This document shows positions 17,289-53,061 of a DNA stretch of 64,000 nt, piece by piece; position 1 is the first letter of the stretch, and each line of letters opens with the position of its first letter. A model generated the notes under the pieces. That model was not told the DNA's origin, ran no database searches, and saw nothing but the letters and a program-made list of their open reading frames with translations. Source of the DNA: Octopus sinensis. Taxonomy: Eukaryota. Both the position numbers and the translations under genes were made by a program. Location of the stretch: assembly GCF_006345805.1 (NCBI RefSeq), contig NC_043000.1, positions 81,654,001 through 81,718,000 of the forward strand, given 5' to 3'.

Positions 17289-17336
17289 TCATCCAGTATT
17301 CATTCTAATTTTATATGCACATATTAATAATGTTAT
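17289..17336 (-). CDS. MPHOSPH8: MPP8-like gene, last coding exon: ITLLICAYKIRMNTG*
   Basis: Long polypyrimidine acceptor (tttttcttttcAG), phase 0, TGA at 17291-17289; resembles the vertebrate MPP8 C-terminus (recalled as KLLIGAYRVQLQ). Confidence 0.85.
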   Translation of the reverse strand: MTLLICAYKIRMNTG

Positions 17337-19140
17337 CTGAAAAGAAAAAGAAAAAAAGAGAATAGTTATGATACAGATATACTATACATATATGCATTTA
17401 ATTCATAATGCATAATGTAAAAAAGTCTGTGAAACTATGTAAAAGCACCCAGCACTCTGTAAAGTGGTTGGCATTAAGAAGGGCACCAGGCCATAGAAAC
17501 AATGCCAAATTAGACTGGAGTTTGGTGCAGCCCTCCAATCCATGCCAGCATGGACAATGGACCTTAAATGATGATGATGATTTATTCATTATTCAAGAAT
17601 GTACCAGTTTTGAATAATGACAGTAAGACTCAGAGTAGAGACAGAGTGAAGCCTCAGCTTCAAATAAATGAATCAATTCAAACTCTCTCTCACACACACA
17701 CACACACATACACGAGCAAGAGATAAAGACATATTTGATGTTAAATTATATCTAATACATGGAATACAGAAGATGATGTGATGATGATAAACTGAACTAA
17801 AACAACAATCTGCAAAACAATATCAAGACACACATATGTAGAATTGTAAATCTCTGATTTTGATGATTAGGATTTAGTTGATCGATCATCTGAATTAACC
17901 ACTCCTGAATTAATGGTTTCAAAATTTTGGTACAAAAGCATTCAATTCAGAGGAGAAGGTTAAGTCAATTACATCAACCTCAAGGCTCAACTGGTACTTA
18001 TTTTATCAACCTCCAAAAAGATGAAAGGCAAAGTTGACCTTGGTGGAATTTGAACTTGGAACATAAGGACGGTTAAGCATTTTGCTCAGCATGCTAATGA
18101 TTCTGCCAGCTTGCTGCCTTATTAACGATAACAGAGTATTCCATAGACAGCGAGTACACTTAACATAATTTTCAAGCAGAATAGGCATTATACAAGTGTA
18201 ATTCACCAGACAGACATCTATAGTTTCTATTTACCAAGTTTCATACAAAAAAGAAGTCAACCTGGGACTATAGAAAGTGGAATTTACCCAAGATGCCACA
18301 CAGTAGGACTGAACTCAGGACCCTCTGATTGGAAAGCAAACTTCTTAACCAATCAACCAAGCTACACCTATGCAGATGCACACACATACATCAGGTACTG
18401 GTGGATCTCTGTTGCTAGACAATAAGGATAAGTTTTGTGATCAAGTGACTGAGTATTCCATAAACATGTGTAACTTTAACATAATTCTGAAGAAAGATTG
18501 TGATACAGTATATGATAGTACAGTATTTTTAAAATTACAGAAATAATTAAAACAGGCTTCTGTAAGGCTATGCAAAGGGATTGAAACTAAGATCTCGGGG
18601 TTGCAAAGCCTACTTCATAATCATTAAACCACACTCTGCATCCACACACATACATAATGGGTTTCAGTAAAGTGTCTACTAATTTCACCCACAAGGTATT
18701 GGTCAGCTTGAGACTAGAGAAGATAATTCATTTTGGCTTTAGCTCACGATACTAACGAAAGAACATTCCATTTTACATTTCTCAGTTGGTATAGCTGTTG
18801 TTTGGCCCTAGCCTATCTCTGAGTAGACCTATGATAAAAATCATTCAATCTAATAATCATTTTATCCTTTTGTTCAAACATCACATATCTAATACCACAA
18901 AATCGAATATAGTTTTAAATATCTTCCTTTTGAAGACACTAGGGTGTAATTTCAGAAATATTTGGCAACTATTTCTTGCGAATAGAGCAGCCAAGCAGAG
19001 ACTGCTTTGTTGACTCAAATTCAATAGCAATTGCCATCAAGTTTGGTGAGATTAAGCTCAAGCAAACTAATATGTTCTATGTCATCTGTATGTTGGTGAT
19101 GGGGGAATGGGGTAGGAAGTGAGAATAAAAAGTAACTTAC

Positions 19141-19221
19141 TCTGACATCAGGGTATGTTTCAATAAGCAATGTGTTGTCTCCATGCCTGAGATTCCTGAA
19201 TGACATCACAAACTTTGATGG
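19141..19221 (-). CDS. MPHOSPH8: MPP8-like exon: PSKFVMSFRNLRHGDNTLLIETYPDVR
   Basis: ttttttttcttAG acceptor, GTAAGT donor, 81 nt, phase 0-0; resembles the MPP8 segment recalled as FVYSFSPVAGPNKLFI. Confidence 0.85.
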
Positions 19222-19369
19222 CTAAGAAAAAAAAGAACACAACCAACATTAAACATTAGGCAGACAAAAGATCAAAACAGATTGAACACTTACACACACA
19301 TTATGAACGTGTGTGTATTTATGTATAAATATTCTTTTTACATGTTTGTTTCCTTGTACACAATATTAA

Positions 19370-20447
19370 CCCTTTCGTTACCAAACCGCCCGAAAAAAAT
19401 TTTGGTTAATGTGACCAAGCCGCCCAAAACCGCCCGAATTTGCCTATTCATATTTAAATGAGAATATTAGAGCAAATCTCTTTAGAACATTCGTGAAAAT
19501 ACGTATTATACTTCATAAAGAGTTCAACTACAGTTCTGTACAAAAATCGAAGTGTAATTTTAATTCCGTGAATTTTGGGAGATTTTTTTCCGAAATTTGT
19601 TCCTATTGTGTTTTCAAAATTTGTAATTCTGACAAAAAATGGATACAAATTTCATTATATCAAGCAGCGAGTCAGAATTCGAAGGATTTTCTACTGAAGA
19701 CCTTCATAAATCTAACTCTATGACTGAAAAAAAAAAAAGCATGTGGTATTTGATAATGAATCTGATGTTTCATTTTCCGAAAGTGAAAACAGTGAATCCG
19801 AGAGCTCTGACAGCGATAAAGAAAATGAATTGGCACCTGAATGGAGTGAAAATTTAAAAACTGTTTCTTTCTGTGATTTTTCTGAAGAAACTGGACCAAG
19901 CCACAGACTTTCCCAGAAGAGTAAAGCCTTAGACTATTTCTTTTTACTTTTTCTGATGAGTCTATTTGAACTCATTACGGCGGAAACGAACCATTACGCT
20001 AAACATAAACAAAGCGAAAGAAAGGATACTTTGTGGTTTCCCACAACCTTAAATAAAATTAAGACTATTTTGCCATAAATATTATTATAGGTATCAGAAA
20101 GTTACCCAGAATAACAAATTCTATCGTAAAATTTTCTTGTATACCCAATTGAATATTAGCTAATAACCTATTTTCTATAGCGATGTTTGAACAAAATTTT
20201 AATAATTTTATATTTTGTTGAATTTACCTGCATCTACCTGCAATTAGAGCCACTTTGTGACAAAAATTATAGTATAGAATTGGTTGAGAAAATTTCATTA
20301 AATTATCTTCCAAAATTCCCGTTAATATATTGATAAATAAAAAAGTTATAGTTGTTTAATGAAACCAGACTAAATTTATGATTACGTTAGAAATTAATTG
20401 AAACACATAAGGGGTGTATTTTGGTCAGAAATATAGTAACAAAAGGG
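19370..20447 (+). mobile_element. Internally deleted piggyBac transposon (1078 bp) in an intron of the MPP8-like gene
   Basis: TTAA at 19366-19369 and 20448-20451; TIRs CCCTTTCGTTAC / GTAACAAAAGGG (1 mismatch); frameshifted transposase N-terminus at 19639-~20120 (acidic stretch, W..F.EETGP, LDYFFLLF, ETNHYA, WFPTT, GIRKLPRI); DDD core absent. Confidence 0.92.
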
Positions 20448-20740
20448 TTAAAACAGCTAAAAGTCTTCTGAAGCAGCACCCCAACTGATTTTATTTATGA
20501 GCCATCACTGATTCCAGTAATTAACATTCAGTCTTATATTCAGAGAGTGTACCTAGGATCTTATCCAATGTGTCCTTCCTTTTATAAACAGGCATGGTGT
20601 AATTTAAAGCTGATATTATTACTCTTTCTGAGGGGATTAACCAACACATAGGAGCTCCCTCACTGTGTTGGTAATTAAGTTTTAGTGGAAGAAAACAGAA
20701 CACCCCCACCCACTTCAAAAACAAGCTAAATGTTACTTAC

Positions 20741-20871
20741 CAAGGATACTTGTTTCTCTAAAATACCATTCAACCACACCTGAGATACCACAGATTCTCC
20801 TTTTAGCCTGCAACCAATTTGCAGTGCTGCTATATCGTTGACGTGGACCAGAAACAGAAGGTAACCTTCAT
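20741..20871 (-). CDS. MPHOSPH8: MPP8-like exon: (Y)EGYLLFLVHVNDIAALQIGCRLKGESVVSQVWLNGILEKQVSL
   Basis: ttttactttgtAG acceptor, GTAAGT donor, 131 nt, phase 1-0; resembles the MPP8 C-terminal domain (recalled as GILLFIFHAN...ARLCGPCSVQAVVLN). Confidence 0.9.
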
Positions 20872-21724
20872 CTACAAAGTAAAATAGAGAAAATCCGAAA
20901 TGTAAACAATATTAATAAACACATTTCCAAAACAGTGAGCTAAATCGATAAGACATTATTTTATTTTCAAAATTAAACATTTTGTTTTTTAATACCTTTT
21001 TCTTTGGCATCCCTATGTCTGGTGAGACCATGAACTGACATTAATCAGTGACAGTTAAAGTGCAGTGCGGTAACATTAGAGTGTTGTATCCAAAAAGCAG
21101 TCATCAATACAAATCTCCTAGTACAGCTTGGCACCTGTTTATCACAAAACTAGCTCCTTCCTAAGCCATTTAGACCAATAGGGCTAGATTGTTGATTTCT
21201 GTGGCATATGTATTCCCCACTGGATGGGACACCAGTCTGTCACAGGAATACTTGTTTTTGCCAGTTGAGTGGACTGGAGAAACATGAAATGAAGTGATTT
21301 GCTGAAGAACACAACACATAGCTTGGTCCAGGAATTGAAACCACATTCCAAACCCTAACCACTAAGCCACAAGACTTACCAGACGAAATTTGTATCAATT
21401 CTGAAGGACTGATGAAAACAATGACCTTGATGGGATTTTAATCTAAAATGTACAAAGCAGAAACAAATACTTCAAGGTATTTTTTGTCCAATGGTCTAAA
21501 GCTACTGCTATTAACCACCCCTTTACTTAATATTAACACCTACACTAACAATGAAGTAAATAAATAACTCTATGTAGTTACCTCAGATATTTAATGAATA
21601 GATCTGAACTATACCTACTTGATTGATTGTCTACTGACATTTCATAAATGTTTATGACACTCAATCAGAGCTGACCTCAAACTATACAACAAACAACAAA
21701 TATACAAACAGTTGAACAACTTAC

Positions 21725-21876
21725 AGTAAGTACATTCCTTTACAATGTGACGAAAGGAAATTTGGATTTTTCGGCTTTTAGCAAGAGACATACACTGTAG
21801 AGGAAAAACCTCTTCCAATAGTGTGTTCTGTTCACCAAGCCAGTTCTTAATGCACTGATTCATTTGGCTAGAAATC
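21725..21876 (-). CDS. MPHOSPH8: MPP8-like exon: (K)ISSQMNQCIKNWLGEQNTLLEEVFPLQCMSLAKSRKIQISFRHIVKECTY
   Basis: T-rich ccAG acceptor, GTAAGT donor, 152 nt, phase 2-1; LLEEVFPLQC resembles the MPP8 motif recalled as LLEPVFPIAC. Confidence 0.9.
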
Positions 21877-22598
21877 CTGGAAAAAAAAAAATAAAATAAC
21901 ATAATTATATCATATCAAGAGGGTGCTGGACTTAAATGTGTTAAATTTTGTTGGCTTAAAAGTGAAGTTAATAAAGAGGTAGGAGTACTGCTAAAGACTT
22001 AAAATAACATTGCTTGATATCTATGTAGCTAGAAAAGTTCTTTCTCACTATTTAATCTGCAGTTTGGTACTGGTGCTCCAGCACGGGCTGCGTCTCGATA
22101 GTTCACAGCAATTAAATAGAAAAGATAAGTAACAAGTTGGAGGAGTTATCAAATCTCTTGTAAAATAAACAAATAAACTAAAAAAAAAACTGCTGTAAGA
22201 ATTACCTCCCTTGAGCAATTACTAGGTTACGAAGCTTAGAACATTATGAACAAGGCAAGTTCTATCTGGGGCTGGATCGTCTGCACAAGATCAGTTTAAA
22301 GTAAACTGACAACCTGTAGTATGCAGAATACTACATGCTAGCTACAGTTAGAACCAGTGTTAGGATACAATGGAACTAACACACAGCTTGGTTTAACACC
22401 ACCATCTGATACTTAGTAAATTTCACACTTGCAAACATAGACTAGTTAAAGTCTCTGCTAACATTTTGGACAAAATAGATTGGTATCAAAAGAACTAATA
22501 AAAAGGAATTCCAAACTGATAGAGAAAAATATATAAATCTTGGCTTGGGAAATAAGTGTTGAGGATATATAAATTTAAAGTATCAAAAGACAACTTAC

Positions 22599-22843
22599 TT
22601 GTCACTGTAGCTGGAAAGAAGGCTCTCTATATCACTGAGGTTTGGATTTTTACTGGCTAAATCCAACGAATTCAAGTTGTCCTTGTTTTGAAAACCAATA
22701 TTAGCACCATGGTCCAGTAGTAATTTCACTATGTGAATATTGCCACTCAAGACAGACTTTATTAACGCCGTTTCTTTGTTTGTCGTATATTTTTCTAGGT
22801 TAGCGCCCAACTTTACGAGGACTTCTACAGCTTCTACTTCACC
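22599..22843 (-). CDS. MPHOSPH8: MPP8-like exon with ankyrin repeats: GEVEAVEVLVKLGANLEKYTTNKETALIKSVLSGNIHIVKLLLDHGANIGFQNKDNLNSLDLASKNPNLSDIESLLSSYSD
   Basis: ttgattacAG acceptor, GTAAGT donor, 245 nt, phase 0-2; clear ankyrin consensus (TAL..., LLL..GA). Confidence 0.95.
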
Positions 22844-22984
22844 CTGTAATCAAGACAAAGTAAGAATAATTATTTTAAAACAATACAGTTTTAAACACAG
22901 TTAAATAATACTATATTTTATTGGCTACAAGGGCCCATCAGTACAAAAAGAGTAAAAAAACATCAGACACGTTAATCAGTATAT

Positions 22985-23385
22985 TACTCTTTACTCTTTT
23001 ACTTGTTTCAGTCATGTGACTGTGGCCATGCTGGAGCACCGCCTTTAGTCAATCAAATCGACCCCAGGACTTATTCTTTGTAAGCCTAGTACTTATTTTA
23101 TCGGTCTCTTTTTTGCCGAACCGCTAAGTTACGGGGACGTAAACACACCACCATCAGTTGTCAAGCGATGTTGGGGGGACAAACACAGACACGCACATAC
23201 ATATACATACACACATATATACGATGGGCTTCTTTCAGTTTCCGTCTACCAAATCCACTCACAAGGCTTTGGTCGGCCCGAGGCTATAGTAGAAGACACT
23301 TACCCAAGGTGCCACGCAGTGGGACTGAACCCAGAACCATATGGTTCGTAAGCAAACTACTTACCACACAGACACTCCTACGCCT
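22985..23385 (-). mobile_element. Full-length young tRNA-derived SINE (family A)
   Basis: Minus strand has A box (GTGTGGTAAG), B box (GGTTCAGTCCC), central (TG/TA)n and a 3' end GCTCCAGCATGGCCACAGTCACATGACTGAAACAAGTAAAAGAGTA; CpGs retained. Confidence 0.9.
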
Positions 23386-24678
23386 GTATTTCATTTACTT
23401 TTATATCAAGTAGGCTACAATTTAAATTCCTGTTCAGGTTGTCAGATTGATAAAATAAATAGCTGTTGATTACTGTGACAATATTACTGACACCTTGAAG
23501 ATGGTGCCCCAGAATGGCTACAACCCATTGACTAGAATCAATAAAAATAGTTAAAAAGAAGGAAAAAAAAAACTGTAACAACAACCGAACAATATTGCAA
23601 GATGTTGAATGCAGCAATCACTAAGTATTTTTGCACATGCTTTCTCACTTCCGCAGTGTCCTATCTATATTTAGTCAGATAAAGTGTACCTCCACATGAA
23701 AACTGAACTAGTAAGAGCTACACTGTCTTTGTCCTGTGTACAGTGCAGAATAAATAGTGAAATTCACATCAACAAGCAAACTACAAATACTCATTTAAAA
23801 AATATATTTTAAACTATTTTTATTAGTTCTAATAAACTTCATAGTGTCAATAATATTTACCAAGTAATTAACAGCTATTTATTTTATTAATCTGTTGACC
23901 TGGACAGGAATTTAAACTCAGGGCATAAAGTGATAGAAACATTGCAAGACATCTGATGTTATATTTTATCAATTTTGCTATTGCCCACCTATTAAAATAA
24001 TATTAAAACTTTGTCTGTCCGTCCGTCTGGGGCCCCTGTATCTCAGTCTACATTTGCTCTACATAGACATATTATACCTTTTTGGAATTGGGATGATCCC
24101 AGGATTGAAAATCTGCCCTTCATTTGGTTCTCAAACATCCAGCATTGGGATCAGGTCTGGATAAGGATTTGTTATATACTAACAGTTGAAAGTTCAAATT
24201 TTAAAAGAACTCCAAAAATTTGTGAACTTACAAGTTTTTTTATTAAAACTGAATGTAATACCATAACTTTGCGAATTCAAAGTGACAGTGATTGCAGACC
24301 ATCTCAGACTGACTGATAAAGACAGTTCAGAGAGAAGAAAATAAATGATGGCTTGCGTTTATTTGAACTGGACCTTACAGCATATTGGCTAAATCATTGC
24401 AAACAAGCTGAACCAAAAATGTCACCAGGTTCTTGAGAATCTTTACCAAAGTTCACTCTGTTGAAAACATTTGGTCCAGGTATTCTGGCCCATGTCTGTC
24501 TTGCAGACACTCAAACTGGACAGAACCAAATTGATTTGATTAATCTCAAATGTGATAGGTTCCAGACTTCTTTATATGACTTATTTAATAAAAGAGAAAA
24601 AACTTGAGAAGGCTAACATTCAGTTATTTCTTTATTGAAGTTGCCCACCATGTTTTCCCTCCAGGCATTCAGACTTAA

Positions 24679-24904
24679 CCCCTAAAGCATTTTAAACTAG
24701 TTCTACCTGGCCCAAATAGTCTCACTGTTTTATGCTCAAACTGGCTAGATTCAGTTCTTCACACCTATCTTATGGTGTCATTCCAAAAATAAACAAATAC
24801 ATCTTCAAAATCTTTATGCTACAAGTTAATGCATGGTTAATTCAAAACAATGTGAATAAAAAAAAAAGCATTATATTTAACAAAATAATCTGAATGCTGA
24901 AGAG
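24679..24904. mobile_element. piggyBac-type MITE, copy 2
   Basis: TTAA at 24675-24678, CCCCTAAAGCATT...CTGAATGCTGAAGAG, TTAA at 24905-24908; internally homologous to 41261-41461. Confidence 0.75.
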
Positions 24905-25052
24905 TTAATAACCACATTAATCTCAGCAGTCTAGGTAGCCTGTAAACATCACAGGCAGTGCCCCACTTCCTCCTACTCCTTATGAAAGGGATTTTAAGGC
25001 ATACAACACAGAAACAAAGAGAGTTATAATATATTTGGAAATGAAATCTTAC

Positions 25053-25150
25053 TCTGGTACAAGCTAAGGTCAATGCAGTTTCACCAGTACTGAGTTCTTT
25101 GTCCAACTGAGCTCCAGCAAGTGCCAACAGTAGTGTAATATCACTGAAAC
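25053..25150 (-). CDS. MPHOSPH8: MPP8-like ankyrin exon: (G)FSDITLLLALAGAQLDKELSTGETALTLACTR
   Basis: tttatcattgacAG acceptor, GTAAGA donor, 98 nt, phase 1-0; GETAL ankyrin motif. Confidence 0.93.
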
Positions 25151-25963
25151 CTGTCAATGATAAAAAAAAACATAAAATGTAGAAGATTATACAATCTTAA
25201 CCATGGGCAATAGACACAAATGAAGTCTTCAATGGTTTGGCCACACCACACAAAAGTTAACTGTAGCAAGAGCTTTAATCACTCAAACTACCAAACACTT
25301 CAAATTATATCTTCAGTTACAACATCAAACCCTCTATCACATGTCATCAGTTATGCACAAATTAAGGGTAGCAACATTTTTAGCCTTCTTAAATGATCAT
25401 TTCTGTTTGTTAGGAAAAATCTTCAAATTACATAAACAGAGCTCCATAATAAACTACATAGGAATTTTTAATTTGCTGCCAATTGTTCTCAGCCTTTCAA
25501 AAAGCCGTTTGCAGTCATATGGACTGAGCCATTGGAGAGTTTCATGTTTCATGGCCATTGGATGCATCACAGTGGTGGATGCAATATATGAACTGACAAC
25601 TATTCTGTTACTCTATTCACTCAACTACCTAAAATATCAAAGTTTAAATATCCATCTGCACAACAACATACTGATGCGACACAGGTAGAGCAGTACAGTA
25701 TTTCTTTCCAGAGAAATACCAAATTCATTACGACTACTACTAATAAAGTCACAGATTTGCAATGGAGGTGGGTAAGAGCCAATGGGATCTTAAAAGAAAA
25801 AAGTTAACCTTTAATCCAATAGAACATTAAACTTTTAAATACTAATGATACTGCTATGGTTTAAAGCAATCAACTATTGTCCTGTCTCCCATATAGCACA
25901 AATTTATATCTCATGCTATGACAGAAAACCTCTACCTAGATGTAAGGTCTCAAAACAACTTAC

Positions 25964-26098
25964 CTCTCAAGATGGACTGCATTATTAATGTGTAGCCACC
26001 ACTGTTTGGAGATTCTAGATCATATCTCCAACGGTCTCCTCTCAAAGCAGATTTTAATTTACCATAATCACCTGCTAGTACAGCTTGAGTAAATTCAT
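25964..26098 (-). CDS. MPHOSPH8: MPP8-like exon: (D)EFTQAVLAGDYGKLKSALRGDRWRYDLESPNSGGYTLIMQSILR
   Basis: caatttcAG acceptor, GTAAGT donor, 135 nt, phase 1-1; resembles the first MPP8 ankyrin region (recalled as AVKNGDY...YNLDQEDSSGMTLVM). Confidence 0.92.
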
Positions 26099-26874
26099 CT
26101 GAAATTGAAAAATATGAAGTGAATAAATTTTTTTAGACAAAATGAAATAAATCTTAAAAGAAGCCGTACCTTAATTTACATTTTTTTGTTTTGGCTTTTC
26201 ACCTGAAGTGATACATTAAGTTACTGAGAAAATTCACTTGGTAGATACCTCAATACTTTCTCTGTGAAAATCTCCAATGAAATGTTGATCTAAATGAAAA
26301 CCTGTTTAACACGGGCCAGGGACAATTCTAGCTCTAAAATGTGAGACCACCAAACCAAACACTCAAATACTTAACCCATAACTGAAGCCTAAAGCTATCC
26401 ACCCCATAAGAATGCCAAACTATAGGAAAACTATAAGGTTAGGTATCAAATTAATATGTGACCATCATATACTCAAAGACTGAAATACCTTTGGTTATAG
26501 GTCAGTTTGACCAGGACATAACCACTATATATTGCTGAGATCTTTATTAACTGAGATAATATAGAAATATTTGTACATTAAGAATAACCTATGATCAAAG
26601 ACATTAGTTACAACCATCTCATCTCTTAACCAAACAGTGTATCTTAGGTTACATTAACCAATGTGTATTTCTGTGAACCTATTCAGGAATTTGTCAAACC
26701 AATATTATTTGTGAAATGAGAATTTCTGTTCCACAAGAATTGCTATAAGAGATCAGTAGGCCCGAAGCTCAATATTTGTGAAAAACTCCCAACACAGCTA
26801 TAATGGCATTTAACTGAAGATTGTTCAAAAGTATTTACTTTAGTCACAAAAGTTGGTAGAAATCATCAACTTAC

Positions 26875-26941
26875 CATTGGATAAGTGAAGAACGGTACCA
26901 TTGGATAACCTTGGTTTTTTGGTTGATGTGGAAGCTGCACT
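26875..26941 (-). CDS. MPHOSPH8: MPP8-like exon: SAASTSTKKPRLSNGTVLHLSN
   Basis: tttttcatccttgcAG acceptor, GTAAGT donor, 67 nt, phase 0-1; links the flanking exons in frame. Confidence 0.85.
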
Positions 26942-27695
26942 CTGCAAGGATGAAAAAAATTGATTGTGAGTTTTAATTTAGTCAACATACCAACAATGTA
27001 CATACACATATGCACTAATACTTACATAAGAATAAAACATATCTGGAAATTATATACAATATATTAATGTCACAGTGAAAATATAAATCAATAAACCAAA
27101 TGAGCCTTGGGAGCTAAGAGAGAAAAGTAGCTGTATCCAACTAGCTTTGTAATTCTTAAGAGAATCATCAGGAATCACTTAACTCCCCTTTCAATCAATA
27201 AAGTTAAGAACTACATATAGTCTAATAAATACTGAAAACAAACTATTTACTGCAGTAAATATGCGTGTGGTTGATGGCTGAGATTTAGTAACAAGTGTAC
27301 CAACACCTAACACAATGTAGTTATCAAATGAGCATGATAGTCATTGTTTATGTAAGGCATGATCTGAGGGAAATTTAGCTATCATGCTGACAACAACAGC
27401 TAAAGGGTTGTGGAGGAATTTAATAAAATAACTAAATACCACTATAATACTGGCATTTCATAAGTAACAACAGATTCTGATCACACAGAATCTGCTGTAA
27501 ATAGATTATGTAAATTATTTTTTAGTCATGATATATTCCCCATTTTGAATGTTGAGAGGGGATTAAAATTATTTCTGATGAGTTTCAATAAAAACAAAGC
27601 TAGTTGAATGAGCCTTAATCTCAGCTATTGAGGAGCCTGTCATTAATCTACAAGTTTGTTTTCAAGGCAAAACTAAATACATTGCTGGTTTTATA

Positions 27696-27751
<56 letters not shown>

Positions 27752-27758
27752 AAAATTT

Positions 27759-27945
27759 GCCATGATAGATCGCTAGCCACTAAACCTATTTCATTTTCTC
27801 TCCCTGTGAATTTCTGTGTTCTTTTCTGTCGAAGAGCGTAGGCTCGAAACATAAAACACTTTCTCACTTCCCAAGTGTTAAACTAATACATCTGTTTGTT
27901 GTTTACATACCCATATTCGTCTTTTGGTTTTTGTAAATTCTCACT
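27759..27945 (+). mobile_element. Penelope-like terminal-repeat fragment with hammerhead-like motif (27826-27854), between microsatellites
   Basis: CTGTCGA A GAGC-GTAG-GCTC GAAAC ATA; homologous to 59023-59155 (-). Confidence 0.6.
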
Positions 27946-29432
27946 ATATATATATATATATACACATACACACACAAATACGTGACTGTGCACAAACACT
28001 CAAATCTATTAGGATGTACAATCAACAGAAAATACACCTTAACATTACACTTTATTTATTAGTTTGAAGCTGATGTTTTACTATTCATTAGCCTGAGTAT
28101 CACAATTAGGTGCATTCAGGCAAAAGGTTATGAATAATCCTTCATTTGCTCAAACACAGACATAATTCATTTGGAATAGCAATGAAATGAATCCTCAGAT
28201 TTGAATACATATTACATACGTTTATACATTTATTTCTCTACATAGCACACACTTATGTGTGTGTGTGTGTGTACACGCATGCATGTATGTATATATATGT
28301 CTATTTGTATGTGAGTGTGAACACACATACCCGTTCTCATAACATCTACTTTTCGGTTCTAGCATACACTGCATGAAGATTGTTTAAGTTGATACCTCTA
28401 CAAACTGGACACTCTTCCTATCACCAACTCTTCACCTGTTTCCACATAAGGTAACTTTACCCTCCTTTGTCCCGTAAACAGCTCAATGGTTAAGCATGCT
28501 CTTGCAGATCGATAATAAAGAAACACCATTTATGTATTACAATAACTTTTTCCTTCAATCAGTAAGCACATGTCACAACAAAGAAATGCACACACACACA
28601 CATACATAAGTAAATACAAGATTATATATATCTTTTATCTCTTGTTTCAGTCATTAGACAGTAGTCATACTGGGGTGCAGCCTTCAAGAATTTTTAGTCA
28701 GATATATCGATCCCAGTACTTTCTTCTTTTTTTTAAAGCCTGGTATTTACTCTCAGTCTCTTCTGCTGAACCACTAAGTTATGGTAAACACACACAAAAG
28801 ATTCTTCCAGTTTCCATTTTCTAAATCTCACAATGCCTAACTTGCAAGCTATAGTAGAAAACACCAGCTGACAGTGTCCTTGTAGTAGGAACAAATCCCA
28901 AACCATGTCCTTTTAAAGTGAACTTCTTAACCATAGAGTTATATCTGCACTTACATACATTACCCTTGCTTGTTTGAGAAGTGACAAATGTAAGGAAGTG
29001 ACCAGCCTGTAATAATTCAGATATGCAATACATTTTTAGTTTACTATAGAGTTTAGTGAGCCACTACATTAACAGTACCCTGAGAAGTGTACCATACTAA
29101 CCAGACAATGTACCCACACAATGCAAGTAAAACTATCACTCTCAAATAAAAAAAAAAAAAGGAAAAGTGCAACAATAGGAGGAGGAGGAGGAAGAGTTGG
29201 AATAGACTTAACCTATTTACAAGAGAGGGAAGGAGGGAAAAAGAGTATAAATGAATAGATTTGAACTACAATATAGTTAAAGGAGGTAAGGCCTGTGAGG
29301 TAGAAATAGGAGAATGAAGATAAAACTATCTGTATGCATGTAAACACACACAAATATGTAACATACATATTCAAATACACACATTGGGTATGTGTGTGTG
29401 TATTTAAATACATGCATATTATCATCTTGTTC

Positions 29433-29465
<33 letters not shown>

Positions 29466-31892: not shown

Positions 31893-31975
31893 CTCATAGT
31901 CTCGTGACCTTTCCGACCTTCGATAACAGCAACAAAAATTTGTTAATTCTTCTGTTGTACAAGCATCAAAGAAAT
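31893..31975 (-). CDS. MPHOSPH8: MPP8-like exon: (N)FFDACTTEELTNFCCCYRRSERSRDYE
   Basis: ttcattatttttccAG acceptor, GTAGTG donor, 83 nt, phase 1-0; open and phase-compatible with both neighbours. Confidence 0.75.
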
Positions 31976-41260: not shown

Positions 41261-41461
41261 CCTTTTAGTATTTATAATCTGACCATATCAAGCCCAAATA
41301 TTCTATCTATTGTATGTTCAAACCAACCAGATCCAACCTCTCACACCTAACCTACAATGTCTTTGTATAAATAAACAATCACATCATTGAAATCTTAAAG
41401 CTATGAGATAATGCAAATAAATTAGCATCACATTTGACAGAGTGATTTGAATGCTAAAGGG
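41261..41461. mobile_element. piggyBac-type MITE, copy 3
   Basis: Left TCAA|CCTTTTAGTATTT, right GAATGCTAAAGGG|TTAA (41462-41465). Confidence 0.8.
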
Positions 41462-42660
41462 TTAAGTAGAAAGCAGAGGTGATGTAGTGTTGATCAATAT
41501 CTTATAGTATTTATCATCATCATCATTAATATTCAGGTAAATGTGATACACTGTTAGAAACATTTGGTGATTTTCCTCAGTAGATTTTATCTTACACTGT
41601 TGCAAGGTACTAGTAATATACCGAGGTCAAATTAATCAGCTCCACATCTCTCCATGAAACCAATGACACCGTGCCAATATTTTCAAGACAGCAGCATTGC
41701 ATTGGCAGGATATGTGTTTTATAATCTTTAGTTATCTGATTGGGAGTCAACTTTTCTTTCAATTCTTCTGAGGTTGGTTATGTCCCAGTAATAAACTGGA
41801 CATTGTTTCAACTCCACATACAATTTTCGAACATTTTACTGATGTAAAGCACCATTAGTGACACCATTTGTAGAAAAATGGTAGACGAAGTTAGGTGTCT
41901 CACTTTTGGTTTAAATTCAAACAAGATAAGGCACTGCATTTATGCCCTCCGACTACCAGTATTAACATCACCATGATGTGAATGACATTAAGTTATCAGT
42001 CGCCATAATGCCATAACAACACCAATTATCATTATTATATTTGCAATTTGCATTTGATGCAAGTTCCTTTCATACATATGACACTAATACTCTTGCAAAA
42101 ACAAAACAAAAAAAAAAGTGAATATCATACTTAGCCCCCACCCTCATCACCACCCTTTCATGACTTTACACCTAAAGAAATATAGCTCTAAGTTTTATCT
42201 TGAAATAATCAAGAATTTGTATAGGATAAGTAAAATACCTAACTTTTTCATTATTTTGTATATTAAGCCAGTATTTGAACTACAAATTAAAAAACTCATA
42301 TACTAAATAATGACTGAAGGTTTTAATTTAAGTATCAATAATTTTTGTAACATCAAGTTGAGGGTAGACTTAGGCAGGTTTAGTATAAAAAAAGAGTTAA
42401 TTAGTGGCATTGCTGCATTGACAGAAATAGTTCTTTGTGAAATAGGTGAGGGTGTTTTTCTCTTCCTTATTCAGTTGTTCGAGGAAAGCCCACATCATAG
42501 CTTTTATGTGTTCCAAAATACTGTGATATACTTAAGACAACAAAATTAACTAGCATAGCACAAGAGCAGAAATTTCATGAGATGGCCAGATTTATTTGTT
42601 TTAAATATATCTTAGTGATTAATAGTGTTGTTGGTTATAGGTTTCAAATCTGAAAGCCAA

Positions 42661-42860
42661 ACTAGAATAACTACAACAGCTAGTTTATTTTACTGATCCC
42701 AGAAGGATGACAGATGAACTGGAATAACTACAACTGCTAGTTTAATGATCCTGGAAGAACAATAGATAAACTAGAATGATGACTGTTTGCTTATTTTATT
42801 GATTCTAGAAGGATGACAGTTAAACTGAAATAACTACAACTGCTAGTTTATAGATCTGGG
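42661..42860. repeat. ~55-bp tandem repeat (4 units) containing a SINE-C-like segment
   Basis: ACT(A/G)GAATAACTACAAC(A/T)GCTAGTTTA...GATC...GAAGGATGACAG units start at ~42661, 42718, 42770 and 42824. Confidence 0.7.
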
Positions 42861-44023
42861 TAAGATGGCAGGTCAAGTTAACCATGGTGTGATTTGAACA
42901 GAGAATATAAAGAGACTTTAAAGTAAATAATGATTTCTAACAAAGGTAGAAATAGTGGTGAAGATGTATGAACACTGGTTTATTAGTGGTACCTTATCAA
43001 CCCCACAGAGAATGAGAGGCAAAGTTACTACAAAGGGGTTTAAACTTAGAGAACTAACAGTTATGACTAAGTAAGATGTGCAGTCCCCTTCCCCTATCAT
43101 ACTTAGTAATTAGAGTAATCCTTTCTACTAGAGGCACAAGGTCTGAAATTTGGCGGGACTCAAGTGCTCGACTGGTAGTACTTTATTTTATTGACCCTGA
43201 AAGAATGAAAGGCAAATTGACCCCATGGAATTTGAACACAACATAAAGCTAGAAGAAAAACCACTAAGCATTTTGTCTGGTATATTAATAATTCTGTCAG
43301 CCTGCCACAAAACAAAACAAAAAACTATACATTAATTAATATTTGCTTCATTTAAAACAGCTAAAATAGAATTGCCACAACCTTGTAGGTTATTCACAAA
43401 AAAAAAAAGGACAATTGACAGAATTGATGCTATTAAATTATTGCTACTCATTTTACTGATGTCCAGAAGAATGAAAGGTAAAGTTCATGCTAACAAGATT
43501 TAAACTTGGAACAGAAAAAACTTATTATTATGGTTTATTATCATCATCATCATTATAATTATTAGAATTATTATTACTGAAGTGGATTAGCAGAATCATT
43601 AGAGCATTAGAAAATCCTACTTAAGTCAAGTTTGCCTTTTGTCCCTAACCCTAGACTTTAAAATTGTTGGTATTGTGCCTAAATTAGAAATTTTTATAAG
43701 TACCACTGACACTATTACTAAGATGGTGGAGAATTTGCAGAATCAGAAAAGTTATTAGATAAATTATTAGGCCGTATTATGTCCCTCTGCATTAGAATTC
43801 AAATCTTGTTGAAGACTAGAATTTACAGCTTTTTGTCTACATTATCAATGAATTCTTATTAGAAACAAGAGCACATTATATTATATATATATATATATAT
43901 ATATATCATCATCGTCTAACGTCCGCTTTCTATGCTGGCATGGGTTGGACAGTTTGACTGGGGACTGGTGAGCCAGATGGCTGCACCAGGCTCCAATCTG
44001 ATCTGGCAGTTTCTACCTTCCTA

Positions 44024-44078
<55 letters not shown>

Positions 44079-45780
44079 GTGTGTGTGTGTGTGTGTGTGT
44101 GAAAGAGAGAGGGAGGGAGGAAGAACAAAAAGTACACTAATAGAAATTGAAGTTTTAGATCTTGCTCTCTTCAACATTTGAGCCCAAAAGAGGTTTGTCG
44201 ACATACTAAATGTACATGTGTGTGGCAGTACAAGATAATCTAATGATTCAAACCACAAAAGAGTTGCCATAACTTTGATCAAAGCTAACAAAACAGGCTG
44301 ATACAGTTAAAATTTACATTAAGCAGTGATGTGCACACAAAGAACTTAAGATTCTTTACAAATCTTGAAGAATTTAAGAGCATCTATGTGGTTGCTCGAG
44401 CTGCATGAAATAGCAGTTAAATTTCCTTCATGCCAGACCATACTGCCATAAGAGTAAAAAGTTGGATAATTATGGCTGGAATGCCTTTGACCATTTATCT
44501 CAGGGACTAAACAATAAACCAATGCAAGCAGATAAGGTAAAGAGTACCAACACAGCTAAGAGAAATACCATTTAATACAGTTTATTGAGAAACATTGACA
44601 TAGCTTACATTCACATGAAGTACAGGTATATGAACAAGAATATTAACAAATCTCTCTTACACACAGACAATTAAACAAAAGTGCTAAGAGATAACCATAA
44701 TTAACATCATAAACTGATATACAGAATTAAAAATGTCAACAGCATTTCAACAGAATAAACTCAGAATATGCTTTTGTTTATAATGATTTCGTCAGCGAAA
44801 CATGGACTTCCCTGTGCTTATTGGTGTAGTGACAATAGAGTCACTAAGTTAAAGCACATGATTAGTACAGGATTTAATGTTTTTAATTCTGATGGTAATT
44901 CTTGAATAACTTACAGACTACAAACAGGGTACAGAGTTGAAATGCACAAGCTTGTCGGGTAGATTAGTCTAGCATTTTAGTGTCACAACCAGTGTGTCCT
45001 ATTAGCTTTCTTACTTCAATCAGGGCCAAAAGGAGAAAATAAGGAAATGTTAAGTAAATTCTAATTCAACAGGAACTGTCTAATTATCTAATTAAGTGTT
45101 GTTAGAAGCATAACAATTGCCAGAGTGAAAGTGACTATCATGATCAGAAGTTCAACCTCACTACTACCAAACAACAATACTAAAGGTAAAGTATTGTGTG
45201 GTCCGAAGCAAAGAGACATCAGAACTCTTAACAAGAACACTGGGTAAGCAGCCAGATGGAAGAACCGATTCAATAAAAACTAAGGAAGGGAACTTCTGAA
45301 GTTGGTAGTTTTAATCCCCTTCGGTGGCTAAAGTCAAGGGAGCACTAGATGTTTGACAGGGTCATGATTTTTGTTTTGAAATATATTTAAACCAGGCACA
45401 CCACTTAAATTTTAAACAGATTTTCAAAAACGATTTTGTTAGGATTAGAATAATGAGTAAGACAGTTATTGGAGAACAGAAAACATAATTGACGATGTAC
45501 TAAGATTTAATATAACTTGATTTGGTAAGTCCTCACCACCTTTTATATCAATTATATATGTGTGTGTGTGTACGTTTGTCTAGACATTACACAATGTCTG
45601 CAAATGAGCATAAATTGGAATACGAATGAGGTTGTTCATTTCCAGTCTTCCATGAAAAACTGTTTGGATCTGAGAAAAAGTTACTTTACTTGGAAACAAG
45701 CGATGGTTGGCTACATAAAGGGCATCTGGTCACAGAAAAGTCTACTTCAAGAAACTCCATATGACCCATGCAAACATGTA

Positions 45781-45840
<60 letters not shown>

Positions 45841-46499
45841 TATATATACACACAAAGCATATATATACATACATATGTACACATACATACATATACATAA
45901 CATATGTACACATACATACATATACATGTATATATTCACATACAAATGCACAAATATGTACATATATATACATGCACACATAAATATATACACATGTGTA
46001 CATACATATACACATACGCTTCATTTTTACATACAATTTTTTTCATGGAAGGATGTTAAGACAAATTAATTACTGAGGCACTGTTTGACAGCTGGATACC
46101 CCACCTGTTGCTAACCCTTACCCGTTTCTCAAGTAAGGGATGTCATTTCACGTTTTCAAATATAGGAAGCAAGCAGACAATTTGTTGATAAAAACGACAA
46201 GAACATCACCCACAGAAAAGTGTAAACAAACATACAGGCACATAAATATATCAATACATACACACACACACACATATATACATATACATGATGAACTGCC
46301 TTCAGTATCCATCTACGAAGTTCAATTATAAGGGGTTAGTCAACCTAGAACTGTACTTGAACACACCTCCCCAATGTGCTGTGCAGTGGAACTGAAGAGA
46401 CCAAGTGGTTAGGAAACATCTCTTTACAGAGCTATGCCTACACCAATTGCATATAAATATTAATACACACACACATACTACGTATAAATGCATATCTAC

Positions 46500-46540
<41 letters not shown>

Positions 46541-47416
46541 ATGTGCATGAGTGTGTGTGAGAGAGAAAGAGTATATTTTTATCTCCTTGTTTTGACTTTG
46601 TATGAAAGTTACAAATGAATGTCAGTGTCATCCAAGCAGTGCCATTCATTTACAATATTGTGCAAATACATGCTTGTGTCCAAGGAAATGTAACTGTGTT
46701 TGGAAACAGGTGAGGTTAGCAACTGAAGGGTGTCAACCTATAATAAATCTGCCTCACTCCATGCAAGCATACAAAAGACAATGTTAAAAGAATGAGATAT
46801 ATACATACATATATATATATATGCATACACACATTGTTCATATGATCTATAAGAGACAGCTACAACATCAGTGCAAGGCTGAGAGAGCCAAAGAGGTGTC
46901 CTGTAAATATCTGATACCAACTCCACCCTACTGTTAAAAACAAAAAAAGACTTACAGCCTGTTAAAATTTAAAGCCAAAACTCCACCAACAGGTCTCAAA
47001 ATCAGTTTTGACCCTCCTTGCAGAGTTTCACTTGGAAGCCTTAGATACACATATGTAAGAACACATTCTCATATTTCACCCACAATGCATCAGCCAGTCC
47101 AAGGCCAGATAAGACACGTGCCTAATGTACTACCCTTTGGTATGGAATTGAAAACTATTTGGTTATAAAGCAATCTTCATTATAACCTACAGGCTGGTTA
47201 TTATTAGGAATGTGCATATATTTTGCATTTGTGAAGACGCCCTCTCTTAAATTTAACATATATGTATATGTATACATACACAAACACATGTATATCCTCT
47301 TTTTAACTCTGTATGATTTCTAAACACCACTGGCTGTGAAAAGTAATGGTGGATCACAGCAAAATTATTTCATCTCAAAGTACAAAATGCTACAAACTTC
47401 AACAATGTATACTTAC

Positions 47417-48259
47417 TTCGGACAATTTTGTTCCTTATGGATATTAAAGGGTTCTGAAGCTTTAAAAGAGCACTCATTTCCCATCGGTTAGAAGTTCCGA
47501 GAGAGCTTTTAGAATTATTATACATTCCATAAGTCTGGTCAGTCAAAGAATATCCACTTGCATTTGAAGACGCAAGTGACTGTTTTGATACAGAATTTCC
47601 TTCAGGACACACGTCCGTCGTTGATCGGCATGCTTTGATCTTAGAAGAGTAACGGTTGTTAATGCTTCCATATTTGTCTTCTGTTGATGACAGTTTGGAA
47701 TCTGTGTTGAGCTCATCACATGGCAATAATAACTGACTATTACTATTACTGTTATTGCTACTACTACACATAGGAGTGAGCAAATCAGAAACAAACAAAC
47801 AGGGTTCTGATATAACATTATCCTCTTCTAGTAAACTCACACTTCCAGTGTCTTGTGGGGTCATTGATCGTGATATTGACACTGTCGATGCCACGGACTC
47901 CAGCCCTGGAGAATTACTGTCCATTTCAGTTTCGGTTTCGTTTCTTAAGCTAGACACTCCACTATCAACACTGCTTTCTCCCACTGCAAATATATTGCAA
48001 CTAGTCTTTTCAGGAGGCAACGAATTCATCGTAGTCCTCATCGTCCTTTTCGGAGGTGTCCGTAGGTTTTGAAATTTAGTTTTTTTCCGTTTCGAAGAAT
48101 AACTTATTACTATGTTTCTATTTGGCTTTAGGCGAGTTCTTCGTTTTTTGGCAAGACAATGTGTAGGGTCTTTTGAGTTCTGATGATGCACTGCCGAGGA
48201 TGGCGATGAAGATGGTGTCGAGAGGTTATCACAGTCACAATGCTGACTTGACGCATCAC
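47417..48259 (-). CDS. MPHOSPH8: MPP8-like large exon (843 nt): Ser/Thr-rich, likely disordered region with basic patches (AKKRRTRLKP, SKRKKTKF)
   Basis: tttctttatttctAG acceptor, GTAAGT donor, phase 1-1, fully open (matches ORF 47370-48191). Confidence 0.88.
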
Positions 48260-49570
48260 CTAGAAATAAAGAAAAAATTACTGTAATTCAAGCAACAACA
48301 ATAGATGTCACAGAAGATGGTGAATACAACAGCCACTGCAAGATTAGAATTATGCCGGAGAGAATACATAGTTTATAAACAGGATAAATTAAACGAATGG
48401 ATTAAAGTGCTTTATTTGTTTGGCAATCCTTCGGTAGAAGACGACGACGTCATTCACCCTTTTCTCAGCCTAGCCTTTTTATCTATATACCATGAGGAAC
48501 CCTGTGTGGGTGAATAAAGTTGTTTACTAGTACAGAAGGATTACCATTTTCTTTTTATTTACAGTGAATTATTTTAACCAGCTCATAATGGGTTAGAACA
48601 CTTAAACCGTAATAATTCTTTAAAACGACCGCGAACACCAAGAGTCCAACATCCTTCCCCCACATCTTCAGTTAATCATACCAAAACATAGCGCTGCCAA
48701 CATGGCTATGAATTTTGAGGGAAGGGTTGGTTAACTGATTAAATTGATTCCGGAAGACTGAAACTCAAAGTTGACCTTGGAGGGATTTGAACTCAAAACA
48801 ACCGGAAAAACATCGCAAAGCATTTTGTGCGACAATTTAAGATCCTGCTGTAGTATGTGTGTGTATGTGGGGGGTGTACATACACAGACGACAGGCAGAA
48901 AAGAATAAATTAAAATAAACTTAGTCTTTGAAATAAACCCTTTCCTCAGTGAAAAAAAAACACCTAAAAACATGAGTTTGGGCTGACATGAAATTCCTTG
49001 AATACGGGAGGAATTTCTAGAATGTTCACTAATTCCTTTCAATAAAAGTGAAAGAGAGCAAAAAAACGAAATAACCGTTGCCTGAGCAGCTGACCAACTT
49101 GAGATTCGAACTTTTGATCTACATGATAGCAGACGTACAATGTTTTTTTAAAAATCCTATACCAAAATATGGGGAAGAGGGAGAACAAGAACACGTGTCT
49201 AAGAGTAATAAAGCTGATTTTACAACAAAGGATCTCACAAAATTCGCAGAACTATAATATATATACATATATATGTGTGTATGCGTGTGTGTGCTCTTCT
49301 GTAATAGTGAAAGAGAGGGAAGAAAGTTTGAGAAAAGTTTCCCACTAAAACTTACAATAAAAACAAGAAATATAGGGAAGAAGTGGAGAAGGTAGAAGGG
49401 TGGTGAGTAAAGTGACATAAGACAATAAGACCGAGTAGGAAGGAAAATGGTAAGAGTAATAAGATAGTCCAGAGGAAGGAGGGGAGTAAAGAAGACTAAT
49501 AAAAATCATAACAGACGACCTGTCGCAAAAACAAATGACAAAACGAAGTAGTGACGAACAATTAAAGACG

Positions 49571-49578
49571 TGACGTCA
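49571..49578. promoter_or_regulatory. Perfect CRE palindrome TGACGTCA, intronic
   Basis: GACG TGACGTCA in a CpG-rich context; function inferred. Confidence 0.4.
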
Positions 49579-52500
49579 ATTAATCGACCGTAGCAACACA
49601 CACACACACACACAAGGATAAATAAGGTATTAAGAGAGGGTGGTGAAGGTGGTGGTTGATAAAGACTAAGCTACGTCAAACTAAGATAAATCACATCATC
49701 ATCATCAATAGGTAGACAAACTGACACTTACAATAAGACAGTGAGCTCGGAATACGTGGAGACATCAAAATTGTCGACCAGACAACATCAGATTAGTTCT
49801 TTAAAATACTGCTATCACGCACTTGCTCTTTCTCTCACCCTGCCTGCCTCTCTCTCTCTTTCCTCCTCGGCCCCATACCCACGCAGAAACACACTGATCG
49901 TGTGAGAGAGTGGGTTGGAGTTTGTAGTCCACCTCCTCTCACTGTATGTACGCAGTCGTCACCACTCACCTCTAACACTGCCCTACCATTTACTATCTAT
50001 ACCACCACTACCGCCATATACTATCTAAACCATTCCAAACCACCACCGCCACCACTAAAGAAGCCATCAGTCACTGGGTAGAGCTGGAAGTAAGAGTCAT
50101 GTTGATCCAAAACTGATGACGACAGTTGACGGGAAGACATACAAAGCTGTATGTATGTGTAGCTAGATAGATACTCACACACACATAGGAAGGTTTGGAT
50201 AGAAAGGGTTTGAGTAAATATATACACTTAAGAGGGGAAAAAAGAGGAGTAACAAATTTACAGATAGGCGAGAGAAAACAAACCGAAGTAGGAGGAAGAG
50301 CAAGAGAAGGCGAAGGAGGTAAAGATGAGAGGCGGTAGAAATATATTAGTGCCAAATTTAGACACTTCTTAAAAGTCAGATTGACTATCGGACATTGTTC
50401 CCACTCATACACACAACACATTTTCTGTTGTTTTTTTTTTTTTTATTACTGCTTCACATGAAGAAAAGATGTACTCGACACATTGCAAGATAGAATTATT
50501 GCACACAGCTGGTACTTTCTTCTGCCGCTGCTCAGAGTTTATTAGTTTCCTATTTTATAAATAGACAGGAGTACCTGAGGGAGTGTACAAGGAGAAAGAA
50601 GACACAGGGAGAGATGTAAAAGGAAGCGAGAGCACTTGTTAACGGAGAATATCCTAAGTCGTCATAGAAACCACTGTACTCCCTCTCTCACTATAACAGA
50701 AAGAAATGACAAGATACAATGAGAATAATAAAACACACACACACAAGCCAACAAAGGCCACAATAACTATACTATTAGTGATAGCAACAGTACTAATAGT
50801 AGTACTACTATACTATTACTACTACTGTTGCTACAACCGTCGTAATAATGGCGAATATGTGATGACTTCAACAGCGGAAGGTAACTGTATGACACCACTA
50901 AACAGCGTACTATCACAAATAACAGTAATATATTGAGTATGGTTCGATTTGTTATACAGGCATCTCCCTTCCTCCACCAAAATTGGTCATGTGCGCAGAA
51001 TTTTTTTTTTCTTTTTACTACAGTTAGACTGATACCAGATACCGTTAAAACAATTACTACTACGACGTCGACGGATACACTACAGACTTATATACTATCA
51101 CCACAGCAGAACGAAGCCCTACTACTACCACTACTATCACTATTGATAACACTACCACTACTACGAACATAACCACATCATAGCCAACTGCTGCTACTGC
51201 CAGTGATAGCACCGCTACCATCACCACCACCTGCTAAATTATTACTACTAGTACCACCACCACCATAACTTGCTAGTAATACTACTAAAACCTGCTGCTG
51301 CTACTACTACTACAACTACTACTGGCAGCAACAACTGCTGGCGCCACGTGAGGAAGTCTGCAGAGGTAGAAAATAAAGCACAAGACCCACTGCTCGATTT
51401 ATTGCGTGTATATGTGTGTATGTATACATGAATGTATGTATGTACATGTCCGCTTATGTGAGCTTATATACACACATGCTGAATAGAGAGTGACAGCTGA
51501 ATGATATGAGGATTTTTAATGTGCCAGTGTTCCAGGGTAGCAAGATAGTCTTTTGTGTTGGTATACTGAGGTAAAGACAAGAAAACAGCCACACAAAACA
51601 ACCACCACTACCGCCACCATAAAGATAACAACAGGAACGACGATGAGAGGTGGCCACACAGGAATGGAAAGTTGACATGCATCTTCTCACCTCAGACATG
51701 ATGTAAAGCATTGCTGCCAACGCCTACTGCACTAAAAGCTGCAATGACTGCAGATAATATATCCATAAAGCCCAGCTTGATGGAGTAGTAGTCAATGGCT
51801 GCCTTGCATTGCTACTAAACCAACATCCATATATTCTCCATCTTCATCATCCCGTATACACATGCACACACGTGCAAGTGTGTGTAATGTATATGGATAT
51901 TAGTAATGTGTAAGTAGCGAGTATGTATATATGAGTAATGTGTTTGTATATGTTAATATATATATATATATATATATACAAGTATGTGAGAGTAATCTAT
52001 GTATGTAGCCAGTGAGTCAAGAAGATGGCGATCCCACATTTGTCATTGCAGCAAGAAAATATTTTACAGTAGTGGTGTTGATTGTGTACAGATAGGGAGA
52101 GGGGGGAACAGGAAGGAATACCAATGAAGATGGTAACAGAAGACAATCAAATCACACAAGTGTTTGAATATACACGGTCGCTGTTATCTCGTGTGACCTA
52201 CGTTGAATGTCGACCTAATAAACTACACTTAAACAGGTGGATTGGTACTCATTAGGATTACATACAAACACACACGTGTTAGTATACCCTCACACACTTA
52301 TAAAAAGAAAGCCGACGGATTGCAATTATATACAGTTCATTCAACAGAGTAAACATTCTACCGAAAATAGGGGCTAAATCTTGCCGAGCTTAATTCTGCC
52401 TTTCATCCTTCTGGGGTTGATAAAATAGAATACCAGTCGATGGCATCGACTAACCACTTCCTTCAAAAATTGCTGGCCTTGAGGAGTGAGCATGGGTCTT

Positions 52501-52880
52501 GTGAAAACATTCCCTTTAATGCAAAATGATTTTCCCCTTTAAATTACATAGACCGATGGTTACATAAATAATAGAGCACAGATATGACATTCGTGACTAA
52601 TTTAGAGCAAACATGTGCCAAACAATTATTAACCGCAGAGCAACATGTGATGAGAACACGGAAAACACGATAGTCAAGTTTGTTTTTGTGTCGAGCGTGA
52701 AAAAGTTCGTGAGAACTTTCTCTTCGCTACCAGTTTATTACATACCCACACACACATATATATACATCTATTTATACAAACATACACATTAATATATACA
52801 TACAAAAATATACATAGAATCGTATATACACAAACTACATATCTATTTATTTGTATATATTGTATTTGTACTTCACTTAC

Positions 52881-53061
52881 CCGGGTGGCCGCGGTGGAGG
52901 CTATGACAGTGTAAGAGTCTACAGCTAATGGAGAGTGCCTCTTGCAAGGAATAAAACAACAGTGCAGTCCTGCCAATATGGTGCAGTAGCAGCACCTTTA
53001 AGGTGTTCTGATCACAGTAAAGGTCCGTCTCACTTTGGTGAGATCTTAAACATTTCATTTC
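52881..53061 (-). CDS. Probable first coding exon, ATG at 53058: MKCLRSHQSETDLYCDQNTLKVLLLHHIGRTALLFYSLQEALSISCRLLHCHSLHRGHP(G)
   Basis: Strong donor CGG|GTAAGT, weak catAG acceptor; open frame ending in phase 1, compatible with the 48259 acceptor; no recognised homology. Confidence 0.6.

Follow-up and report, generated by a model that had tools for sequence, protein, structure and literature searches.

The DNA under study is a stretch of 64,000 nucleotides (nt) from Octopus sinensis, referred to below as the window, in which exons were found by stop-to-stop translation and inspection of splice sites. Ten exons lie on the minus strand from 48259 to 17289, with AG/GT boundaries throughout, and together they form one open frame of 626 amino acids followed by a stop codon. 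The spliced translation of these ten exons is exactly residues 398 to 1023 of the annotated protein XP_036358095.1, and tblastn with that protein (P0108) as the query gave 100% identity. We are highly confident that the window contains the last ten coding exons of a single-copy octopus orthologue of MPHOSPH8, which encodes MPP8, that the full gene of about 150 kb has the standard layout, and that its chromodomain exons lie outside the window. A first-pass annotation of the same DNA had described an MPP8-like gene that appeared to lack the chromodomain. The large exon from 47417 to 48259 is not exon 2 of the gene, and the coding exons upstream of it fall outside the window. The exon ending in KECTYY (exon D) has its end 9 nt farther downstream than in the simplest reading.

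The six sequence motifs quoted in the first-pass annotation as resembling vertebrate MPP8 were all present on the minus strand, where they had been placed. A draft protein comprising the ankyrin repeats and the C-terminal domain (CTD) matched the human MPP8 C-terminal construct 8qfb_B with E=3e-24, and the paired segments of octopus and human protein were colinear (LLEEVFPLQ with LLEPVFPIA, GYLLFLVH with GILLFIFH, FVMSF with FVYSF, and LLICAYKIRM with LLIGAYRVQL). Pfam recognized only ankyrin families in the C-terminal 270 amino acids, and ankyrin repeats by themselves draw hundreds of unrelated matches, as might be expected if the gene encoded an unrelated ankyrin-repeat protein that matched the MPP8 motifs by chance. 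Such a coincidence can hardly be entertained, because the 123 amino acids that follow the repeats are not ankyrin sequence and yet had 8qfb_B as their sole match in the whole PDB (E=0.0012), and because the exhaustive HMMER search described below yielded MPP8-type proteins only. When a profile of 16 relatives was used in place of the single sequence, 8qfb_B was matched at 3.8e-49, again with no other PDB match.

The predicted structure gave the same answer. An AlphaFold2 model of residues 716 to 1023, made with a 16-sequence alignment, had a mean predicted local distance difference test score (pLDDT) of 89.6 and a predicted template modelling score (pTM) of 0.84, and in it ten short helices give way to one long helix and then a beta-sandwich. 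In a Foldseek search with this model the top four matches were chains of 8QFB (E=2e-26, template modelling [TM] scores of 0.87/0.90, root-mean-square deviation 2.4-2.6 Å over about 300 columns, 30-31% identity); the matches below them were ankyrin-only structures with TM scores of about 0.46, a difference that also argues against an unrelated ankyrin protein. PDB specificity, the profile match, and the superposition on 8QFB had thus already refuted that candidate. The published MPP8 CTD is made up of five ankyrin repeats and a PINIT-like domain and binds the SPOC-DomI region of TASOR (PMC7618375). Because the predicted octopus ankyrin repeats and beta-sandwich agree with this description, we found no sign of the failure to fold like the MPP8 CTD that had been named beforehand as counting against the assignment. 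The order proposed for the product, ankyrin repeats (Pfam) and then a beta-rich domain (AlphaFold2 model, Foldseek), was borne out, as was its identity as an invertebrate MPP8, given the PDB-specific match, the 8QFB fold match, and relatives that carry the MPP8 name. We concluded that the gene encodes an invertebrate orthologue of MPP8, including the ankyrin and PINIT-like region that in humans binds TASOR.

The full-length product was reached through its C-terminus. An exhaustive HMMER search with the CTD of P0001, a cDNA-derived open reading frame (ORF) of 320 amino acids, found P0108, a protein of 1023 amino acids that is XP_036358095.1, isoform X2 of O. sinensis LOC115210952. Its 90% cluster also holds the O. 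vulgaris protein CAI9721350.1, named 'M-phase phosphoprotein 8-like' (1017 amino acids), and the O. bimaculoides protein XP_052823274.1 (1025 amino acids). The LOC115210952 proteins are XP_029635608.1, XP_036358095.1, and XP_029635609.1, and the O. bimaculoides gene is LOC106867328. Residues 43 to 92 of XP_036358095.1 form a chromodomain (Pfam Chromo, E=8e-13) with the sequence FEVDKIVGMTKINGKERYKVRWVGYPSSNDTWEP, which has the W-x-G-Y and TWEP motifs that the first-pass annotation had sought. Its nearest PDB relatives are readers of H3K9me, namely Rhino, CDYL, and MPP8 (E about 1e-13), and the spacing of F43/W64/Y67 equals that of human F59/W80/Y83, which we take to be the aromatic-cage positions of human MPP8. 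A chromodomain is present in all five current octopus models listed (1017-1025 amino acids; O. sinensis, O. vulgaris, and O. bimaculoides), and the models without one are all obsolete records of the split gene. Since the window exons match residues 398 to 1023 of XP_036358095.1 with 100% identity, the idea of a chromodomain-less gene is refuted. The upstream chromodomain exon that had been named beforehand as evidence to the contrary came to light through the annotated product rather than through long reads, and with this N-terminal chromodomain the headline inference, a chromodomain-less module recruited by something other than direct H3K9me3 reading, also falls.

The failure of the first-pass annotation to see a chromodomain-like exon between 48260 and the window end was itself correct, and our searches extended that observation to the whole window. 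Residues 1 to 397 of the annotated protein had no tblastn match in the window at E<1. Six-residue words from this N-terminal part occurred in 0 of 392 cases in the six frames of the window, as opposed to 575 of 621 for the C-terminal part. A chromodomain hidden Markov model (HMM) made from 11 MPP8-like proteins and run against 3417 open segments in six frames gave a best score of 7 bits (E=0.86); as positive controls, half-domains score 40-50 bits with this HMM. In GCA_006345805.1 the gene is recorded over a range of 150,517 bp, and its product with Chromo and Ank; the window takes in about 47 kb of this range, beginning at the stop codon and ending at coordinate 64000. The chromodomain exons therefore lie beyond coordinate 64000, and the 5′ exons must be past the right window edge, within an intron of over 15.7 kb or on its far side, their positions being taken from the annotation. 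Because the right edge of the window falls inside this long intron, the apparent loss of the chromodomain is geometric; the 'missing' domain is an artefact of window truncation and echoes a split-gene annotation error of 2015.

Relatives in other animals were collected by running HMMER exhaustively with the CTD over 1.84 billion representatives, which gave 18 matches. For the 14 that are distant and full-length, 10 names are on record; of the 10 clusters looked up, six bear an MPP8 or MPP8-like name (those of Elysia, Gigantopelta, Mercenaria, Lineus, and Acipenser and, through O. vulgaris, the octopus cluster). The 14 distant relatives come from Elysia, Gigantopelta, Mercenaria, Nucella, Lineus, Strigamia, Acipenser, and several unnamed transcripts, and an N-terminal chromodomain was recognized by Pfam or motif in at least 12 of the 14, clearly in 11 and in P0124 as a sequence that begins inside the domain. 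The chromodomain of the Strigamia protein is broken, and P0121, which may be a partial model, shows none. Given the chromodomain in most of these distant proteins, the layout of chromodomain, ankyrin repeats, and PINIT-like domain is the ancestral one in bilaterians, and the octopus protein conforms to it. Soon after the chromodomain the invertebrate MPP8-like proteins have in common the motif LKD(T/P)FWKDLE-G-x-(V/I)D-x-F-x-x-DMYSKVK (residues 181-205 of P0108; also P0111-P0118 and P0120-P0124).

Other searches were less productive. A word-indexed search with the ankyrin and CTD draft returned one orthologue, P0001, and about 100 unrelated ankyrin proteins, and missed XP_036358095.1 despite its 100% identity to the query; it was the exhaustive HMMER search that recovered it. 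A word-indexed profile search returned two fragments only. P0001 was considered as a short protein of ankyrin repeats and CTD alone and was rejected, since its source, the 1586-nt contig L001 (Logan SRR27666074), has at about positions 150-240 a 1-nt frame change between …SRPERSRNAE and PKPKKARLSN, at a CCCCTCCCC run, and as a result the ORF caller started P0001 at an internal Met. The frame change is probably an assembly error.

In the full protein of about 1020 amino acids, a chromodomain of the H3K9me type at the N-terminus is followed by a long disordered middle, the ankyrin repeats, and the PINIT-like beta-sandwich. By homology, the chromodomain would read H3K9 methylation, and the ankyrin and PINIT-like region would, as it does in vertebrate HUSH, attach the protein to a TASOR-like scaffold. 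TASOR-like proteins with the combination DUF3715-SPOC-DomI occur in invertebrates (PMC10578480), and in humans SPOC and DomI form the platform that binds MPP8 (PMC7618375). Several points weigh against our reading of the locus. Human MPP8 residues R741 and F813, which are needed for binding to TASOR DomI (PMC7618375), have Q and L as their aligned counterparts in octopus, and conservation is likewise lacking in other MPP8-like proteins of invertebrates. As these human contact residues are not conserved, a HUSH-like assembly in octopus, as far as the sequences go, is plausible rather than proven, and the MPP8-TASOR interface may have co-evolved. In addition, the RefSeq models are predictions, the positions of the chromodomain exons derive from the annotation and not from the upstream genomic DNA itself, and a search for transcripts across the junction …SKSQIT|C|DASSQ… recovered none, giving genomic ORF fragments only.

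This missing transcript, together with the listing of two genes in the 2015 O. bimaculoides annotation, would also be expected if the RefSeq model of 1023 amino acids had wrongly fused a chromodomain gene to a separate, chromodomain-less gene for the ankyrin repeats and CTD. We regard such a fusion as highly improbable, since proteins annotated independently in gastropods, a bivalve, a nemertean, and a sturgeon, as well as human MPP8, show the same order of chromodomain, disordered region, ankyrin repeats, and PINIT-like domain, and the models from three Octopus species agree. Furthermore, the large exon is entered in phase 1 and has no in-frame ATG near its 5′ end, so that an upstream coding exon is needed, and the old N-terminal models read past …SKSQIT into non-homologous sequence, as is typical of a truncated model. 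A single gene that runs from the chromodomain to the PINIT-like domain thus remains our interpretation.

The origin of the chromodomain-less model could be traced. The first-pass annotation had assembled 11 exons into about 686 amino acids; ten of these exons, with their AG/GT boundaries and single frame, were confirmed, whereas the eleventh, its exon 1, is in none of the five current models listed. That exon is a 60-codon ORF with its ATG at 53058 and its last base at 52878, followed by a GTAAGT donor in phase 1, and it is phase-compatible with the large exon, so that 60 and 626 residues add up to 686. In exon structure and length, including the first exon beginning MKCLRSHQ…, this model equals XP_014767654.1, an obsolete record. 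As the exon from 53058 to 52878 occurs only in that record and in none of the five current models, the 686-residue protein is not the complete product. In O. bimaculoides, the annotation of 2015 had treated the gene as two, and the later chromosome-level annotation merged the halves. On the C-terminal side, the obsolete XP_014767654.1 and XP_014767655.1 (686 and 638 amino acids) open with MKCLRSHQSETDLY… and MSPRIPSSLSYC…, respectively, and continue with DASSQHCD…; on the N-terminal side, XP_014778773-6 (398-424 amino acids), named 'chromo domain-containing protein cec-3-like' or 'M-phase phosphoprotein 8-like', continue past …SKSQIT into non-homologous sequence and stop soon afterwards. The window contains the two obsolete 5′ exons (53058-52878 and about 49765-49732), each with a GTAAGT donor and in the right phase. 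The second of them, MSPRIPSSLSYC of XP_014767655.1, lies on the minus strand at about 49732-49765 in phase 1 and, like the first, is absent from the five current octopus models listed.

These 5′ exons might instead mark an internal promoter in the long intron, at about 52-54 kb and/or about 49.8 kb, from which a chromodomain-less isoform of 686 or 638 amino acids is made beside the full-length form. In keeping with this, two alternative 5′ exons, X1 and X2, appear in the output of the 2015 pipeline; the exon from 53058 to 52878 has its consensus donor in the correct phase; and its 60 residues in O. sinensis are the same, 60 of 60, as in the 2015 O. bimaculoides model. That identity is weak evidence, however, because the two species differ by only about 1-3% of amino acids in this protein, and the 60-residue peptide has no recognizable features. 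The exon also lies in a patch of about 2.2 kb (52.0-54.25 kb) that is not depleted in CpG, with an observed-to-expected (o/e) CpG ratio of 0.6-1.0 against a window median of 0.21, and that is not itself a dispersed repeat within the window. Microsatellites aside, the sequence of this patch, 52000 to 54250, occurs only once in the window; the patch takes in the obsolete first exon, overlaps the candidate promoter of the first-pass annotation, and may be an unmethylated regulatory element or an internal promoter. A short form could be functional, since the chromodomain is dispensable for reporter repression in human cells, as stated in the part of PMC7618375 that cites Douse et al. 2020, and such a form, which would be left with the disordered region, the ankyrin repeats, and the PINIT-like domain, could, if it exists, join a TASOR-like scaffold without reading H3K9me3. 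Nevertheless, neither exon was kept in the five current octopus models listed, the transcript search gave only genomic ORF fragments, and the old models came from a split annotation in which ab initio completion to the nearest ATG is a likely cause of such first exons. We therefore consider a short isoform unlikely, and take the full-length, chromodomain-containing protein as the product of the gene.

The coding exons and the intron that contains the right window edge are listed in Table 1. The small exon from 31893 to 31975 on the minus strand, encoding NFFDACTTEELTNFC…, corresponds in position to an acidic/aromatic peptide found upstream of the ankyrin repeats in vertebrate and other invertebrate MPP8; the sturgeon counterpart reads …LDWMTLEDFQKHL…. 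The corresponding region of human MPP8, 540-554 (with F548), is reported to contact the TASOR SPOC domain, and the octopus exon may encode the equivalent of this peptide N-terminal of the ankyrin repeats.

Table 1. Exons and intron of the octopus MPP8 gene in the window
Feature	Position	Strand	Content or basis
Exon 1 of the first-pass annotation	52878..53058	-	First exon of obsolete XP_014767654.1 only; candidate alternative first exon
Part of long intron, without exons for residues 1-397	48260..64000	-	Word, tblastn, and HMM searches
Large coding exon, 843 nt, entered in phase 1	47417..48259	-	Disordered Ser-rich middle region, about residues 398-678 of XP_036358095.1
Small exon encoding NFFDACTTEELTNFCCCYRRSERSRDYE	31893..31975	-	tblastn, splice match; conserved in relative's cDNA L001
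Small linker exon encoding SAASTSTKKPRLSNGTVLHLSN	26875..26941	-	tblastn, splice match
Exon at start of ankyrin domain (DEFTQAVLAGDY…)	25964..26098	-	tblastn, splice match
Ankyrin-repeat exon	25053..25150	-	tblastn, Pfam Ank
Ankyrin exon, final repeats and beginning of long connecting helix	22599..22843	-	tblastn, Pfam, AlphaFold2 model
Connecting helix and first strands of PINIT-like beta-sandwich (LLEEVFPLQC…KECTYY)	21725..21876	-	tblastn, PDB match, model
PINIT-like domain exon (EGYLLFLVH…CRLKG…QVSL)	20741..20871	-	tblastn, PDB match
PINIT-like domain exon (PSKFVMSF…)	19141..19221	-	tblastn, splice match
Last coding exon (ITLLICAYKIRMNTG and stop codon at 17289-17291)	17289..17336	-	tblastn, splice match

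Outside the exons, fragments of a long interspersed nuclear element (LINE)-like reverse transcriptase occur on both strands at 61600-63600, for example at 61607-61945 (minus) and 63082-63562 (plus), with a CpG o/e ratio above 1, and long (TA/CA)n microsatellites at 60.1-62.0 kb flank them; these features suggest that a young retroelement has inserted into the intron. Further CpG patches, with o/e ratios of about 0.9-1.2, are found at 9500-10500 and 19250-20000. The intronic patch at 19.3-20.0 kb contains a plus-strand ORF, with an acidic serine-rich stretch and then …HYAKHKQSERKD…, that may be a transposon-derived fragment. A tRNA scan of the window found no tRNA.

The gene is thus already annotated and canonical, and the claim that it lacks a chromodomain does not hold. 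A HUSH reader without a chromodomain would, if true, have been new for the targeting of retroelement silencing outside vertebrates; what the locus offers is a clean example of an artefact arising from a window edge and a split gene. We know of no functional data on any invertebrate MPP8 or HUSH. In parts of the HUSH literature the complex is held to be vertebrate-specific, or only its absence from Drosophila and C. elegans is noted (PMC9635835, PMC7532188). Bona fide MPP8 orthologues, with chromodomain, ankyrin repeats, and PINIT-like domain, are present in molluscs, nemerteans, and probably myriapods. The octopus protein has the same domain order as human and other vertebrate MPP8, the core subunit of HUSH whose CTD crystal structure is 8QFB: its CTD superimposes on the human one with TM scores of 0.87-0.90 at 30-31% identity, its motifs are colinear, and the spacing of its chromodomain aromatic cage is identical. 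In contrast, it is longer than human MPP8 (1023 as against 860 amino acids), its middle region is unrelated in sequence, and after the chromodomain it carries the invertebrate-type motif LKDTFWKDLEEGKVDLFETDMYSKVK, which was not seen in sturgeon MPP8. Among the octopus records, LOC115210952, CAI9721350.1, and LOC106867328 (XP_052823274.1) represent the same gene, which the window holds without its 5′ part, and XP_014767654.1 (686 amino acids) and XP_014778773-6 (398-424 amino acids) are the two halves of that one gene.

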